From Anaeramoeba ignava BMAN (lineage: Eukaryota; Protista; Anaeramoebae), in assembly GCA_028826165.1 (NCBI GenBank), contig JAPDFW010000081.1, positions 1,054,001 through 1,118,000 on the forward strand: a stretch of 64,000 nucleotides of DNA. The letters are read 5' to 3'. A program made the position numbers and the translations under genes. Position 1 is the first letter of the stretch, and every line of letters starts with the position of its first letter. Below, piece by piece: positions 17,291 through 27,000 of the stretch. The notes beneath the pieces are model-generated. The model saw nothing but the letters and a program-made list of their open reading frames with translations. It did no database searches and was not told where the DNA came from.

Positions 17291-20200
17291 ATGCAATCTA
17301 AATTTTGTTATGAATTTATTAAAAATCGATTATATCTTTTTGCAACAAATAAAAAGCTTAATTTAGAAACTTCAGAATATCATTATTTTACAATTGAAAA
17401 TGAATTAATTTATGAACCATTTTTATTTGATTTTGGTCCATTAAATATTGCTCAAATAACATTATTCTGCAGAAAATTATCTCAGAAATTAATTGTAAAA
17501 ATTATTTACATTACAAATCAATTCAATTCAATTTCAATTCAATTTAATTTAATTCAATTTAATTCAATTTAATTTCAATTTAATTTAATTTCAATTTAAT
17601 ATTTAATTACAATTTAATTACAATTTAATTTCAATTTAATTACAATTTTAATTTAATTCCAATTTCAATTTTAATTTTAATTCAATTTAATTTAATTTCA
17701 ATTCAATTTAATTACAATTTAATTTAAATACAATTTAATTTCAATTCAATTTAATTACAATTTAATTTAATTTTAATTTTAATTTAACTTCAATTTAATT
17801 CAATTTAATTTAATTTAATTTAATTTAATTACAATTTAATTTTTAATTTCAATTTAATTTAATTTCAATTTAATTTTAATTTAATTTGATTTAATTACAA
17901 TTTAATTACAATTTAATTACAATTTAATTACAATTCAATTTCAATTTAATTCAACTTAATTTAATTTCAATTTAATTTCATTTCAATTACAATTCAATTA
18001 CAATTTAATTACAATTTAATTCAATTCAATTTAAATTCAAATTAAATTCAAATTAATTTCAAATTAAATTCAAATTAATTTCAAATTAATATTTAATTCA
18101 ATTACAATTCAATTACAATTCAAATTAAATTCATTTAACTTCAATTTAATTTAATTCAATTCAATTTAATTTCAATTCAATTTAATTCAATTCAATTTAA
18201 TTTTATTCAATTTAATTTAATTTAATTTAATTTCAATTCAATTTAATTTCAATTTAATTTCAATTTAATTCAATTTTAATTTAATTTAATTACAATTTAA
18301 TTCAATTTAATTCCAATTTAATTTCAATTTAATTTAATTTCAATTTAATTCAATTTAATTTAATTTAAATTTAATTTAATTTAATTTCAATTTAATTTCA
18401 ATTTAATTCAATTTAATTTAATTTAATTCAATTTAGTTTTAATTTAATATTTAATTCAATTTAACTTTAATTCAATTCAATTTAACTTTAATTCAATTAC
18501 AATTTAATTTAATTTAATTTTATTTCAATTTTAATTTAATTTAATTACAATTCAATTTATTTCAATTTCCAATTTTAATTTAATTTTTAATTCAATTTAA
18601 TTCAATTTTTAATTTAAATTTAATTTAATTTAACAATTTAATTTAATTTCAATTTAATTTCAATTTAATTTAATTTAATTTAATTTAATTACAATTTAAT
18701 TCAATTTTAATTTAATTTTAATTTAATTCAATTTCAATTTAATTCAATTTAATTCAACTTAATTTAATTTAATTTAATTCAATTTTAATTTCAATTTAAT
18801 TTCAATTCAATTTAATTTCAATTTAATTTCAATTTCAATTCAATTTCAATTCAATTCCATTCAATTTCAATTCAATTTAATTTAATTTCAATTTAATTTA
18901 ATTCAATTTAATTTCAATTTAATTTCATTTCAATTTCAATTCAATTACAATTCAATTACAATTCAATTTAATTCAATTTCAATTTAATTTAATTCAATTT
19001 AATTACAATTTAATTTAATTACAATTTAATTTAATTACAATTTAATTCAATTCAATTTAATTCAATTTAATTTAATTTCAATTCAATTTAATTCAAATCA
19101 ATTTAATTTAATTCAATTTAATTCAATTTAATTACAATTTAATTTTATTTAATTCAATTTAATTTAATTTCAATTCAATTCGATTTAATTTCAATTTAAT
19201 TTAATTCAATTCAATTCAATTTTAATTTAATTTCAATTTAATTACAATTTAATTTAATTCAATTTAATTCAATTTAATTTCAATTTAATTTAATTCAATT
19301 TTAAATTTCAATATTCAATTCAATTACAATTTAATTTAATTTAATTTAATTTAATTCAATTTAATTTCAATTTAATTTAATTACAATTTATTTCCATTCA
19401 ATTTAATTACAATTTAATTTAATTCAATTTAATTTAATTCAATTTAATTTAATTTAATTTAATTCAATTCAATTTAATTTGATTTAATTTAATTTAATTT
19501 AATTTAATTCAATTTAATTCAATTTTACAATTTCAATTACAATTCAATTTCAATTTCAATTTAATTTAATTTCAATTTAATTTCAATTTCAATTTAATTT
19601 AATTTAACTTTAATTTAACTACAATTCAATTTAATTACAATTTAATTTTAATTCAATTGTAATTTCAATTTAATTTAATTTAATTCAACTTAATTTAATT
19701 TAATTACAATTTAATTCAATTTAATTTAATTACAATTCAATTTAATTTCATTTCAATTTCAATTTAATTTAATTCAATTTTAATTTCAATTACAATTCAA
19801 TTTAATTTCAATTTAATTCAATTTAATTCAATTTAATTTCAATTTAATTCAATTTAATTCAATTTAATTTCAATTTAATTCAATTCAATTTAATTTCAAT
19901 TCAATTTAATTCAATTCAATTTAATTCAATTTAATTCAATTTAATTCAATTTAATTCAATTTTAATTCAATTTAATTTAATTTTTAATTTCAATTTAATT
20001 TTAATTTCAATTTAAATTTAATTTCAATTTAATTTCAATTTCAATTTAATTTCAATTTACCACCAATTTAATTCAATTCAATTCAATTCAATTTAATTTA
20101 ATTTAATTTAATTTAATTTAATTTAATTTAATTTAATTTAATTTAATTTAATTTAATTTAATTTAATTTAATTTAATTTAATTACAATTTAATTCAACTC

Positions 20201-23200
20201 AATTCAATTCAATTTAATTTAATTTAATTTAATTTAATTTAATTTAATTTTTAATTTAATTACAATTCAATTTAATTTGATTTAATTTAATTTAAATTTC
20301 AATTTAATTTAACTTCATTTAATTTAATTTCAATTTAATTTAATTTAACAATTTAATTCAAATTTCAAATTCAATTTCAATTTCAATTCAATTTTTAATT
20401 TCAAATTCAATTTCAATTTAATTTCAATTTAATTACAATTTAATATTCTTCAATTTAATTTAATTTAATTTAATAATTTAATTTAATATTTAATTCAATT
20501 TAATTCAATTTTAATTTAATTCAATTTAATTTAATTTAATTTAATTTAATTTAATTACAATTTAATTACAATTTAATTTAATTTAATTTAATTACAATTT
20601 AATTACAATTTAATATTTAATTTAATTTCAATTTAATATTTAATTCAATTTAATTCAATTTTAATTTCAATTCAATTTTATTTAATTCAATTTAATTTCA
20701 ATTCAATTTAATTACAATTTAATTACAATTTAATTCAATTCAATTTAATTCAATTCAATTTAATTTCAATTTAACTTTAATTCAATTTAATTTAATTACA
20801 ATTTAATTCAATTCAATTACAATTTAATTACAATTTAATTTAATTACAATTTAATTCAATTCAATTTAATTTCATTTCAATTACAATTCAATTACAATTT
20901 AATTACAATTTAATTCAATTCAATTTAAATTCAAATTAAATTCAAATTAAATTCAAATTAAATTCAAATTAAATTCAAATTAAATTCAAATTAAATTCAA
21001 ATTAATTTCAATTTAATATTTAATTCAATTACAATTCAATTACAATTCAAATTAAATTCATTTAAATTCAATTTAATTTAACTTCAATATTTATTTTAAT
21101 TCAATTTAATTTTATTTTATTCTAATTTTAATTTTATAAATTCGAATTTAAATTTTAATAAAAAAGGATCCAACCTTAAAAGAAAAGAAAATTGTCTTTT
21201 ATTGCTCAAAAGAACAACAAAAATTTACAAATTCAGCAGTACTAATAACTTCATTTATGATAATTGTAAACGGAAAAACACCCGAAGAAACACTAAAAAT
21301 ATTAACAGATTCTGAATATATAATCGGGTTCAGAGATGCTTCTTATGGAAAACCAACATTTTTATTAACAATCGAAGATATATTGAAGGGATTATCAAAG
21401 GGAATTCAATCAAAATTTTATGATTGGAAAAATTTCTCAGTCCAAGAATACCAATTTCATGAAAAGGTAGAAAACGGAGATTTAAATTGGATTATCCCAG
21501 GAAAACTTCTAGCCTTTGCTTCTCCAAGAGATTATCCATCAAAATCAAATTTTTTTGTTGAGGATGAAGATAATGAAAATGGCTTTGTGGAAAACCAAGA
21601 AAATCAATCATTATTTGCAAATATCGCAACTCCAATCAAAATCAAAAACAAAACTATCAATTGGGATGATGGTAATGACGATGATCATGATGATTTAACT
21701 TCTCAATATTTTTGGAATTCAAATCAACATCTAAATTATTTTTTAAAACATTCCGTGAATTGTGTTGTTAGACTGAATCTCCCTTTATATAACCCAGAAA
21801 TTTTTGTTAAAAACAATATTGATCATTATGATTTGTATTTTGAAGATGGTGGCGTTCCATCTTGGGATATTATCCAAAAATTTTTAAATATTATGGAAAA
21901 AGATATTGAACAAAAAGATATCGAAGAAAAGAATTTGTCTGAAGATAACTCTGAAAAACAAAAGAAAGTTGTCGCTGTCCATTGCTTTGCATTCAATACA
22001 AAAGTCTTAATGGCAAATTCAATTCCTAAAAATGTTCAAGATGTCAAAATCGGCGACCAAATTATGGGAGATGATCATCTTCCAAAAATAGTCAAACAAA
22101 CAATCAAAGGAAAAGGAAAACTATATGAAATCAACAGAAAAAACCAACAAAATTATATTGTTAGCGGGAAGCATCTTTTATGTCTCGCATTCAATAAACA
22201 AATTGACCAAGAACTTGAGCTGGAATACGAAAATGATCAATACTTTCTTTTTTTCCAATTTTATGATTTGAACCACAACCTACAAAAAAAGCATTTTCCA
22301 ATCCTTCTTGGTTATCCACCAAAATACCCTCAAAATTTAGTGAATGAATATTGGAAAAAACAGAAAATTTGGAACAACAAATTTGAATACATTGGAAAAA
22401 ATGATCAAATCCAAAATTTTACAGTTAATGAAAATGACTGGGAAAAAATTAAATCAATTTATTGTTATGCATTTCTAAAAATGAAGTCTTATTACAAGAA
22501 AGGAAAAGCTGCAAAATTTGGAGATGTAATTGATATTACTGTAAAGAATTATCTAAAAAAGCCAAGTTATTGGAAACAAATACACTCAGGATATTCTTCA
22601 TTTTGCAAAAATATTCATCAATTTCCAAGAAACACAGAACTAAGAAAAAATCAAAATCTATATTATCCATTTAAAAAAAACAAAAATATTTGGTTTGATC
22701 TCCACAAAATAGTCTCAATAACACTTAGTACTAAGAAAGGGAATTTTTATGGTTTTGAGCTTGAAGATTCAAATCCAAGATTTCTTCTTGAAGATTATAC
22801 TGTTGTCCATAATTGCAAAGCGGGTTTAGGTAGGACAGGAACTTTGAATGCAATTTACTTAATGAAAAATTATAATTTTTCTGCTCGTGAAGCAATTGGA
22901 TATTTAAGATTATGTAGACCTGGTTCAGTTGTTGGAAAACAACAAAATTTTCTTTTAGAAATTGAAAATCAAATTTTTAAATTAAGAAATAATGGAAATG
23001 AAAATAATGAAAATAATGGAAATCAAAATGAAAATCAAAATGAAAATCAAAATGAATTGAAAGAAAAAATTAGACTTGCAAAAGAGATATCTAATTTAAT
23101 AATTAATGAAAACAAAAATCAAAATCAAAATGAAAATGAAAATGAAAATCAAAATCAAAATCAAAATCAAAATGAAAATCAAAATCAAAATGAAAATCAA

Positions 23201-23773
23201 AATCAAAATCAAAATCAAAATCAAAATCAAAATCAAAATCAAAATGAAAATGAAAATGAAAATCAAAATCAAAATGAAAATGAAAATGAAAATCAAAATC
23301 AAAATCAAAATAAAAATCAAAATGAAAATCAAATTGAAAATGAAAATGAAAATCAAAATGAAAATCAAAATCAAAATCAAAAAAAAGATAAAAATAGCAA
23401 ATCTTGGAATTTGAAAATTCAACATAAAAAATTTCCAAAACGAAAAAATAGTTATAATTCTGATTTACAACAATTTACAGATTTTGCAAATTTAATTAAA
23501 CCAAGATCTTGGCAAGAACCAAAAATAAATGATTTTGAAATTAAACTTGTTAAAAAACCTGAATCTTTTAACACAAAATTAGATATTGATATTGATGTAG
23601 ATATTAACTTGAATATGAATATCAATAGTGAAAATTCTGATAAAATTAACAAAAAAGAAATAAATGAATTACTCCATAAAGAAGAAATAATTTCTGATAA
23701 AAAAGTAAAAGAAGTTTTAGCTCAAAAAAGAATTCAACTTCTTCAGAAAAAAAACAATCCAAATCAAAATTGA
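17291..23773 (+). CDS. CDC14: CDC14 dual-specificity protein phosphatase precursor containing an intein; exons 17291-17494, 21167-23773 (936-aa precursor, 659 aa after protein splicing)
   Basis: [49 protein letters not shown]|[22 protein letters not shown]; intron GT 17495 / AG 21165-21166 is phase 0 and in frame. Confidence 0.96.
17520..21130 (+). repeat. ~3.6-kb AATTT/AATTC/AATTAC pentamer-hexamer microsatellite forming the CDC14 intron (17495-21166)
   Basis: Directly visible; almost devoid of G on the + strand. Confidence 0.92.
21983..22813 (+). mobile_element. Intein (277 aa) in the CDC14 active-site loop; no recognisable LAGLIDADG homing endonuclease
   Basis: Block [26 protein letters not shown]; block [12 protein letters not shown]; block [20 protein letters not shown]; block G TVVHN followed by +1 Cys; removal restores [13 protein letters not shown] exactly. 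Confidence 0.96.
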
Positions 23774-24020: not shown

Positions 24021-27000
24021 TTAATTAAAAGATAAAGAACCAATCATTAAAGTTCCATTATCAAAACCAGCAAGAATATGTTTTTCATCAGAAGTAAAAC
24101 AAACAAATAAAATAGGATGATTAAACTCAAAATTATAAATATTTTTCAAATCCCATAATTGACGAACTTGTATAACTCCTTGTTCACTTCCTGTGATTAA
24201 ATATTGGTCATTTCTTGTTAAATCCCAAGAATTAATATGTTGAGAAGTATCAATAATTTTAAGAAGTTTTCCATTAATACTAAACAATCGAATAGATAAA
24301 TCATTATCAGAATAAACAAGAATATTTCCTTCATTTGAAATTTTAAGCATTGATATTATTGATTGAGTATTGCTGTCATTTTTATTATTTTCATTATTCT
24401 CATTGATGAAAATTGATCGAACATATTGAGCATTTCTTAAAGAATGAATAATACAAGTTCCGTCTTTGGCTCCACTTACAACAATATCAAGTTCTTGATT
24501 CAAATCCACACTTGTTACTTCATCATCATGTCCATATAAAATATTCTTTGGTTTTTCTTTTACTTTTCCTTCTCTCAAATCAATTTTCCAAATCATTACT
24601 GTTGTATCTCTTGAGCCTGTTACTAATATTTCATGATCAATTGCTAAACATGTTACAATATCTTTATGTTGTGTTATTGATTGTATTAATTTGGAGTTGT
24701 CTAAATTTGTTAATTTGAAGCTGTTGTCCCAAAATCCACAACTGAAAAATATTTTTCCATTTCCTAAAATTGCAAAACAATTGCTCATCTTCGATATTCC
24801 AAATGCAAATGATACTCCAACTGTTTTTTTGATTCCTTTCATCAATGATTCAACCTCAAAAACAATTCCTTCTCCATTTTCTATTTGTTTTGTCATTTCT
24901 GTTATTGTTTCTTGTGGTTGAATTTTATTTTCAATTTCATTTTCAATTTCATTTTGAATTTGATTTTTATTTTCATTTTGATTTTCATTTTCGTTTTCAT
25001 TTTCATTTTCATTTTCATTTTCATTTTCATTTTCATTTTCATTTTCATTTTCATTTTCATTTTCATTTTCATTTTGACTTATATTTTCTGTATCTATTTC
25101 TGTTTCTGTGTCTGTTTCATTTAAAACATCAATTTTCTTTGATGGATCTGTTTCTTGTTCATCCAAACTTTTATCATTTTTGTCTTGAATTTCATTTTCA
25201 TTATTTTGATTTTCATTATTTTGATTTTCATTATTTTCATTTTGATTTAACGAAGTCGATTTTTTTAAAGATAATATTCGAGATAAAGAATTTGGCTTGT
25301 TTGATGTTGATGTTGCTATTAATTTGAATGTGGAAAGATATCTTTTCTTATCAAATATTGTTAAACGATTGTCAAAATGAACAAATAAAATTCCTGAATC
25401 TGTTAAATCCAAAGAATTTGTATAAATCTTTGCATATTTAGAAAAATCCCAATATAAAGGAATTGCATTTGATTTTGCAAGTGAATATCTTTTTGGATGA
25501 GGTTTTGTGAATATTTGACTTGGTGTTTGCCCAAAAAACTCAATTTGCTCTTCAATAGATTTTCTTTCTCTTTCATCAGTAATTAAATCAATATTAACTG
25601 AATTTTCATAAGTTAAATAATAGAAAATATTATATGCCTTTTTTGCTTCTTCTCCCTTTTGTTTGTATCCAAAAATCAAATCAATCCATTCGTGTAAATG
25701 TTGTGAAACATATTCACTTTCTAAAGCTCTTCTGTTTATTCTTATAAAATCTTCACTATTTTTTGCCCATTTGGGAAGAATTATATCTCCTATTATTGAT
25801 TCATTTTGTGTTTTTCCCAAATCAAATTGATTAAAATTTTGAAGGAATTCTGGGAAATAATAAAATTCAGGAATCAATTCTTTAACATCTGAAGAATTTG
25901 TTAAACAATTTTTCCATGTTTGTCCAATCGAACTAAATAAACGGTCTGCATGATCGAATTTTCCTCCTTGTAATTTAATTGACAAAGTTGTAAATGGTTC
26001 CATTCTGATTAAATAGTACAAAACGATTGCTTTTATAATTTAAATTTAAAATTAAAATTAAAATTAAAATTCATTTATAAAATTAAAATTAAATTTAAAA
26101 TTAAAATTCATTTTGAAAATTAAAATTGAAATATTTACCAGTGCTTGAATAATGTGAACCATAATAAAATGGTGGAATAACATTATCTGGATCTTCGAAA
26201 CTTTCATATCTATCAATAAATTCTTGAAGCCTCTTTTCATTTAATGCTCCAATAGGCTTTGAAAGATCTCTAAATGTTTTATCATCATTTAAATCCAAAT
26301 CTTCTGAATCATAATCTGAGATTACCCAAGGAAATACAGGATACTGAGAAACATCATTATATGTTCTTCCAGCAATAACATTCAATTCCATTAAATAATC
26401 AAAATTGGATATTTGTCTCTTCTGCCATTTTTTAGTAAGATGTGTTTTTCGAAGCCATTCTGAAGGTCTTCCTGAATCAATTTTGAAAATATTAGGCAAT
26501 TTCAAATTGATAATTTTTCGGAAAACAACATTTCTATTCTGTTTTGGAAAATGAAGGAAGAAATTTTTCTTGTTGGTTAAAAATATTTCCAATCCGGATT
26601 GTCTTAGTCTGTATGATCTTTTATAAACTTTTCGAATTTCTTTCAATTGCCAAGAACGGTCTTTAAAAATAGTATCAGCACTTCTATTAAGAATATTGTA
26701 TTTATCAAGTGTAGAATCCTTATTGGCTTCAATTGCAGCCTCTTTATTTGGATAAAAATCAAGTGATTTTGTTGATATTTCAAGAATTCCGGGTATGATT
26801 GTGAGTGGGGAAAGTAAAGAGCATTCTGTTCGATATATAACTTTCTTAACATTTATATTTGTGGGTGTGTTTTCATTGGATTCCATTGTTGATGTTTCAT
26901 CACCTTTGTTGTAATTCACTGTGCTGTCATCAAATTCATCTTCTGCATTATCTTCTCCATCAATATTTGCAATCATTTTAATTCCAGAAAGTGATTTCTT

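Follow-up and report, generated by a model that had tools for sequence, protein, structure and literature searches.

A probable class 1 intein, apparently endonuclease-free, at the active site of CDC14 phosphatases of Anaeramoeba ignava

The genome of Anaeramoeba ignava BMAN has been reported to hold 103 inteins, 18 novel host KOGs included (Gallot-Lavallée et al. 2023; PMC10710043). Eight insertion sites were reported as shared with A. flamelloides, CDC14 not being among them, and proteomics and in vitro splicing tests have been published for three other Anaeramoeba inteins (PMC10710043). The main text of that paper contains no mention of CDC14, phosphatase, dual specificity or tyrosine, and a literature search found no paper on a CDC14 intein. 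The evidence that the CDC14 site has been catalogued is the GenBank name of a protein of this genome, KAJ5077292.1 (UniRef100_A0A9Q0REL5), [quoted passage not shown], and not the table of the paper. The present analysis concerns another CDC14 gene of A. ignava, found in a 64,000-nt stretch of contig JAPDFW010000081.1 (assembly GCA_028826165.1, positions 1,054,001 to 1,118,000; this whole stretch is called the window below), in which an in-frame insert parts the active-site His of the phosphatase from its catalytic Cys. Very probably, the insert is a genuine class 1 intein of the VMA1/Prp8 kind with no detectable endonuclease domain; most likely it entered CDC14 a single time, in an ancestral gene, and selection acting on the host enzyme has since preserved its capacity to splice.

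KAJ5077292.1 is identical to the CDC14 paralogue on contig C1 and is the closest described relative of the window copy, which lies on contig C71. The two come from the same genome and the same host family, share the insertion point between AVH and CKAGLGRTG and have a like endonuclease-less architecture, and their inteins are 48% identical; they are, however, different paralogues with exteins that are ~43% identical. The CDC14 intein is already known in kind, its sister copy being named in GenBank and the intein content of the genome being published. A sequence-only reading of the window had cautioned that, if the organism was Anaeramoeba, the site might already be catalogued, and this caution was justified, since the organism is A. 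ignava and a same-site paralogue bears such a name. The same reading presented CDC14 as an atypical host; the host is indeed unusual, but it cannot be called undescribed, as KAJ5077292.1 had already been annotated as intein-containing.

The insert occupies exactly positions 21983-22813 of the + strand (831 nt, 277 codons) and is in frame and free of stops between VAVH and CKAGLGRTG, so the location first read from the letters, directly ahead of the catalytic Cys, was exact in both coordinates and motifs. Stops number 13 and 25 in the two other frames of the insert, and when its sequence (28% GC) was shuffled 20,000 times with mononucleotide composition preserved, no shuffle remained open. A search with the Pfam profile PF05203 (Hom_end_hint), the kind of check that the sequence-only reading had called for, matched the insert over the full profile (positions 1-228 of 228) with an E-value of 3.6e-20 and 73.4 bits, the curated cut-off being 32.1 bits, and a scan against NCBIfam gave no meaningful match. 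An alternative explanation would be an unusual in-frame intron that is lost at the RNA level, in which case the intein-containing precursor would never be made. The genome is intron-rich and AT-rich, and in the C1 paralogue a low-complexity stretch that lies further downstream is annotated as an intron in the public model although it is in frame. Nevertheless, this explanation is extremely improbable, because the borders of the insert are TGC...AAT and not GT...AG, because the insert is open in the host frame only, matches PF05203 from end to end and is conserved at the protein level in three paralogues, and because a contig from which a 3.7-kb intron of the same gene has already been removed runs unbroken across the whole insert.

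This contig (1,914 nt) comes from the public run X1, the sole run that covers the stretch, and, when aligned to 21100-22990, is gap-free over positions 21167-22923. The 157 letters that precede position 21167 end in ...TTCTGCAGAAAATTATCTCAGAAATTAATT, a string identical to the final 30 nt of exon 1 (17465-17494), and the contig joins ...CAGAAATTAATT (end at 17494) straight to 21167. The intron at 17495-21166 is thereby gone, and the whole intein-coding stretch is kept together with 110 nt beyond it. Since the contig lacks the 3,672-nt intron and yet contains the insert, the insert is not excised at the RNA level. The CDC14 gene is expressed and the 831-nt insert is retained in its mRNA, which answers the RNA check proposed in the sequence-only reading; contigs give no isoform proportions, and a minor insert-less isoform is possible. 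Three positions of the contig deviate from the assembly: 21773 and 22759 are synonymous, and 22192 (C>A) changes Phe70 of the intein to Leu, a residue that is Leu in the C102 copy and Phe in the C1 copy; these differences could be allelic, strain-specific or errors.

The residues expected of a class 1 intein, all of which had been proposed from the window alone, are present: C1, His64 in the motif VSGKH, the penultimate His, the terminal Asn and the +1 Cys. In an alignment of 67 inteins, comprising the window copy, two paralogous copies and 64 relatives collected by an exhaustive HMMER search, the invariant columns are C1, G29, H64, G257, H276 and N277, and C1, the block B motif S61-G-K-H64, the H276-N277 pair and the +1 Cys are identical in the three paralogous copies. 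The PDB sequences matched by a profile of the three CDC14 inteins are Prp8 inteins and PI-SceI. An AlphaFold2 model of the intein, built from the 67-sequence alignment, has a mean pLDDT of 81 and values above 90 in both splicing lobes; it replaced a first model, made from the three paralogous inteins only, whose pLDDT was 64. When this model was compared with known structures using Foldseek, the top match was domain I of PI-SceI in isolation (1gpp; E 5.9e-12, TMt 0.72), the Cryptococcus Prp8 mini-inteins were matched with TMt 0.87-0.89 and many further inteins were found as well. By AlphaFold2 and Foldseek, the insert adopts the Hint fold.

The profiles PF05204 and PF14528 had no match in the intein at E-values up to 1, and no LAGLIDADG-like motif was found in the three CDC14 intein copies; such a motif is present in 10 of the 64 relatives. 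Since no endonuclease domain was detected, the element has no evident present-day means of homing. It thus consists of a Hint domain and a subdomain resembling the DNA-recognition region of PI-SceI (roughly residues 75-180). Residues ~212-235 have low model confidence and weak conservation and vary in length among the paralogues; this stretch could be a remnant of the site of a former endonuclease domain.

The host is, judged from the sequence, a CDC14 dual-specificity phosphatase, in which DSPn is followed by DSPc and both the HCX5R motif and the acid-loop Asp are found. PF14671 scores 62.3 and 74.8 bits in the two exons and PF00782 has its match downstream of the intein, the catalytic residues of the exteins are intact (the Asp of YFEDGG and HCX5R), and the closest named relatives of the exteins are CDC14A/B of animals and metamonads. 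Four lineage-specific CDC14 paralogues are encoded in the A. ignava genome (42.8 Mb, 147 contigs). Three of them, C71 (the window copy), C102 and C1, carry the intein at the identical point, and the fourth, C116, is uninterrupted, so that an alignment to CDC14 homologues, another check suggested by the sequence-only reading, leaves a clean 277-aa gap between AVH and CKAGLGRTG, with C116 among the sequences that show it. The three inteins are 267-277 aa long and 42-48% identical in pairwise comparisons, similar to the 43-54% identity of the exteins. In public protein searches (152-1466 aa), the C1 paralogue was returned and neither the window's own CDC14 protein nor the C102 paralogue was; an exhaustive search of representative sequences likewise gave the C1 paralogue only, and the other copies are possibly contained within its 50% cluster. 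The window and C102 copies may be missing from the public proteome or may be modelled differently there.

The presence of an intein-free copy raises the alternative that the intein is a dead or cleavage-only relic, so that three of the genes would be permanently interrupted pseudo-phosphatases and CDC14 activity would come from C116 alone. C116 could indeed carry the essential CDC14 function, the homing endonuclease is gone from the CDC14 intein, and its splicing is predicted only. Against this stands the fact that the splicing residues, HCX5R, the acid loop and the DSPn and DSPc cores are all kept in three copies that are ~45% identical, with synonymous divergence (dS) near saturation. Such full retention of residues despite deep divergence argues for selection on a spliced, active product and is otherwise hard to explain. 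The window copy is, in addition, expressed, as the X1 contig demonstrates. Decay of this kind is accordingly regarded as unlikely; on the preferred reading of a functional intein, splicing competence would have been kept because the host enzyme needs splicing.

Upon translation, the gene would yield a 936-aa precursor with a split P-loop. Cys1 of the intein would perform an N-S acyl shift, trans-thioesterification would use the catalytic Cys of the phosphatase itself as the +1 nucleophile, and cyclization of Asn277 followed by an S-N shift would release a 659-aa CDC14 with an intact P-loop, joined through the junction peptide VVAVHCKAGLGR, and a free 277-aa intein. It is reasonable to infer that the precursor is catalytically inactive until spliced, because 277 residues interrupt the strand-loop junction that positions the nucleophile and because that nucleophile is already taken up as the +1 residue. 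One may also speculate that the intein has long been retained in three of the four paralogues because it is used, and not just because its loss is difficult, through conditional splicing that turns the precursors into zymogen-like stores of a mitotic-exit phosphatase. In such a scheme, a Cys1-Cys+1 disulfide or zinc might hold back splicing in this anaerobe, the precursors would be activated post-translationally and the intein-free paralogue would give constitutive activity; this proposal is considered improbable.

The history of the intein was approached through a maximum-likelihood tree of the exteins, comprising the four A. ignava copies and 15 outgroup CDC14s. The four copies form one clade (100/100), within which the three intein-bearing copies form a subclade (99/98); the A. 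ignava CDC14s are placed with metamonad CDC14s by a fork that is weakly supported (74/87). Other organisms contributed 79 CDC14 homologues, all of them without PF05203, and among the 81 homologues retrieved this domain occurs only in the A. ignava protein. Most likely, the intein entered the common ancestor of the three A. ignava CDC14 paralogues once. The simplest account suggested by the sequences would be that a single invasion took place once C116 had split off and that two gene duplications came later.

Several points weigh against the reading of a singly acquired, splicing-competent intein. Block B has Ser at the position where Thr is usual. The RNA nature of the X1 contig is deduced from its intron-less junction, the record giving no run kind, and its identity with exon 1 was read over the last 30 of its 157 exon-1 letters. 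The splicing steps are predicted from the established class 1 pathway. The ratio of non-synonymous to synonymous divergence (dN/dS) between the paralogous intein copies is 0.33-0.42 and in itself counts in favour of the reading, but it is a rough value given that dS is 1.2-1.4 and near saturation. Finally, the intein identities (48% between C71 and C1, 46% between C71 and C102) do not mirror the extein topology. Since the intein distances leave their own topology unsettled, old homing between the paralogues has to be weighed, with three separate invasions taking place while the endonuclease was active in place of a single ancestral entry. Interparalogue and non-allelic intein transfer has been reported for the A. 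ignava genome (PMC10710043), and the target DNA flanking the insertion site is conserved, the empty C116 copy included. On the other hand, the intein-bearing copies are monophyletic, the three inteins are alike in their endonuclease-less architecture and length, they have diverged from one another as far as the exteins have, and a single gain is more parsimonious than three gains accompanied by three parallel losses of the endonuclease. Repeated homing is consequently the less probable course of events, albeit one to be taken seriously, and a single ancestral entry is preferred.

The CDC14 gene of the window has two exons on the + strand. Exon 1 (17291..17494) comprises 68 codons and holds the start of the DSPn domain; positions 1-60 of PF14671 match at G000:C71:1071312-1071494, which corresponds to 17312-17494 of the window, and the limits of the exon, an ATG at 17291 and a GT donor at 17495, were read from the sequence. 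The spliceosomal intron (17495..21166, + strand, GT...AG) consists nearly entirely of AATTT / ATTTCAATTCA satellite, with tandem arrays within 17510-21134 and ~680 copies of the 5-mer. This satellite-filled 3.7-kb first intron is still excised precisely in the RNA-derived contig. An intron at the same position measures 1.1-1.2 kb in both other intein-bearing paralogues and ~75 bp in the intein-free C116. Exon 2 (21167-23770, + strand) encodes 868 aa and extends to 23773 with the stop included. Its N-extein part (21167..21982, + strand, 272 codons) contains what remains of DSPn together with the acid loop (YFEDGGVPS) and the strand leading to VAVH; it matches positions 60-139 of PF14671, aligns across the four paralogues and is covered by the RNA contig. 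The class 1 intein (21983..22813, + strand) follows as a 277-aa element of the PI-SceI domain-I type, with no endonuclease domain detected. Directly read from the sequence, the segment CKAGLGRTG occupies 22814..22840 (+ strand) and completes the P-loop, its first residue being both the +1 Cys of the intein and the phosphatase's catalytic Cys; these residues are unchanged across all four CDC14 paralogues, and the DSPc match begins at 22814. The C-extein (22814..23773, + strand; 319 codons and the stop) comprises the C-terminal half of DSPc and then a low-complexity tail, and is defined by the open reading frame and the PF00782 match, the RNA contig extending to 22923. The predicted precursor of 936 aa is the sum of an N-extein of 340 aa, the intein of 277 aa and a C-extein of 319 aa, with exteins totalling 659 aa, and the sizes calculated in the sequence-only reading (936 = 659 + 277) are recovered from exons 1 and 2.

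The tail of the C-extein contains an N/Q repeat at 23015-23382 (AATGAAAATCAA, ~31 copies), beyond the coverage of the RNA contig. The equivalent stretch in the C1 paralogue, in-frame and K/N-rich, is an intron in the public model, which gives 759 aa versus an open frame of 904 aa. Next to CDC14, an open reading frame on the opposite strand (24021-26021, -) appears, by eye only, to encode a BEACH-like motif and then WD40-like repeats, with long E/N/Q low-complexity runs interrupting these parts.

The CDC14 intein is a member of the large group of Hom_end_hint inteins described for A. ignava by Gallot-Lavallée et al. 2023 (PMC10710043), which has dispersed to non-allelic sites of the genome. Its N-terminal lobe has ~50 matching places there, and ~45 other places match its N-terminal 70-110 aa with 30-47% identity; among the other hosts are MCM, Prp8, RBR ligases of the Ariadne type, a P-type ATPase and an EF-Tu-like GTPase. 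Two E3 ubiquitin ligases of this Ariadne-type RBR class house the nearest non-CDC14 relatives, with 31% identity over residues 1-209. These RBR-ligase inteins, at G000:C61:537289-540951 and G000:C60:830684-834337, are situated directly after the IBR-domain match, in another signalling-type host. Outside this genome, the Campylobacterota DnaB inteins and an intein of the Rhizophagus SRP receptor are similar to the N-terminal lobe.

Another protein tyrosine phosphatase (PTP)-type loop of A. ignava is interrupted as well. Four myotubularin loci (G000:C75:199411-201570, C64:666886-668739, C35:263731-265575 and C112:99950-101845) have a ~370-aa insert in the CX5R loop after the Arg (HCSDGWDR/S...VHN/T, the slashes marking the junctions), and the three that were read (C75, C64 and C35) start with Ser, have Thr at +1 and contain a LAGLIDADG-like stretch. 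In the C75 myotubularin, the catalytic motif is HSTYGWDR, with the catalytic Cys replaced. That the CDC14 and myotubularin inteins are the same element was considered and rejected, as they differ in position, start residue and length, and none of the myotubularin inteins turned up in the 50 matches that the CDC14 intein has in the genome. Two independent invasions of the PTP-type P-loop, at different positions, have thus taken place in A. ignava.

With the catalytic Cys doubling as the +1 nucleophile, phosphatase activity would depend strictly on protein splicing, and the range of intein hosts is extended beyond the replication, transcription and splicing machinery. These observations agree with published work, according to which A. 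ignava is far richer in inteins than any other eukaryote. To the sequence-only reading, the analysis adds that an endonuclease domain was not detected and that the intein is present in three of the four paralogues. More broadly, its added value lies in the retention at the transcript level, the endonuclease-free architecture resembling PI-SceI domain I, the pattern of three interrupted paralogues and one free of the intein, and the independent invasion of myotubularins. Three diverged endonuclease-free inteins beside an intein-free paralogue would make a convenient system for studies of conditional splicing.

Among the characterized inteins, PI-SceI, the VMA1 intein of S. cerevisiae, shares with the CDC14 intein the PF05203 family, a start of the form CFA..T.VLMA, an end of the form FLL....VVHN and a +1 Cys. 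It carries the LAGLIDADG endonuclease domain II (~230 aa), whereas none was detected in the CDC14 intein, and the hosts and sites differ, PI-SceI being inserted in subunit A of the V-ATPase and the CDC14 intein in the CDC14 P-loop. The Cryptococcus Prp8 mini-inteins (6mwy, 6mx6), of which 6mwy is the top PDB sequence match of the CDC14 intein profile (E 2.5e-10), are like it in being nuclear eukaryotic, class 1 and endonuclease-free; they are, however, 100-130 aa shorter, the CDC14 intein keeping the extra subdomain that resembles the PI-SceI DNA-recognition region. Insertion in a conserved phosphate-binding loop is a theme common to the CDC14 intein and the published survey of this genome (PMC10710043), but the P-loop example given there is the Walker A motif, which is occupied by class 3 inteins, whereas in CDC14 a class 1 intein occupies a CX5R loop of the PTP type.

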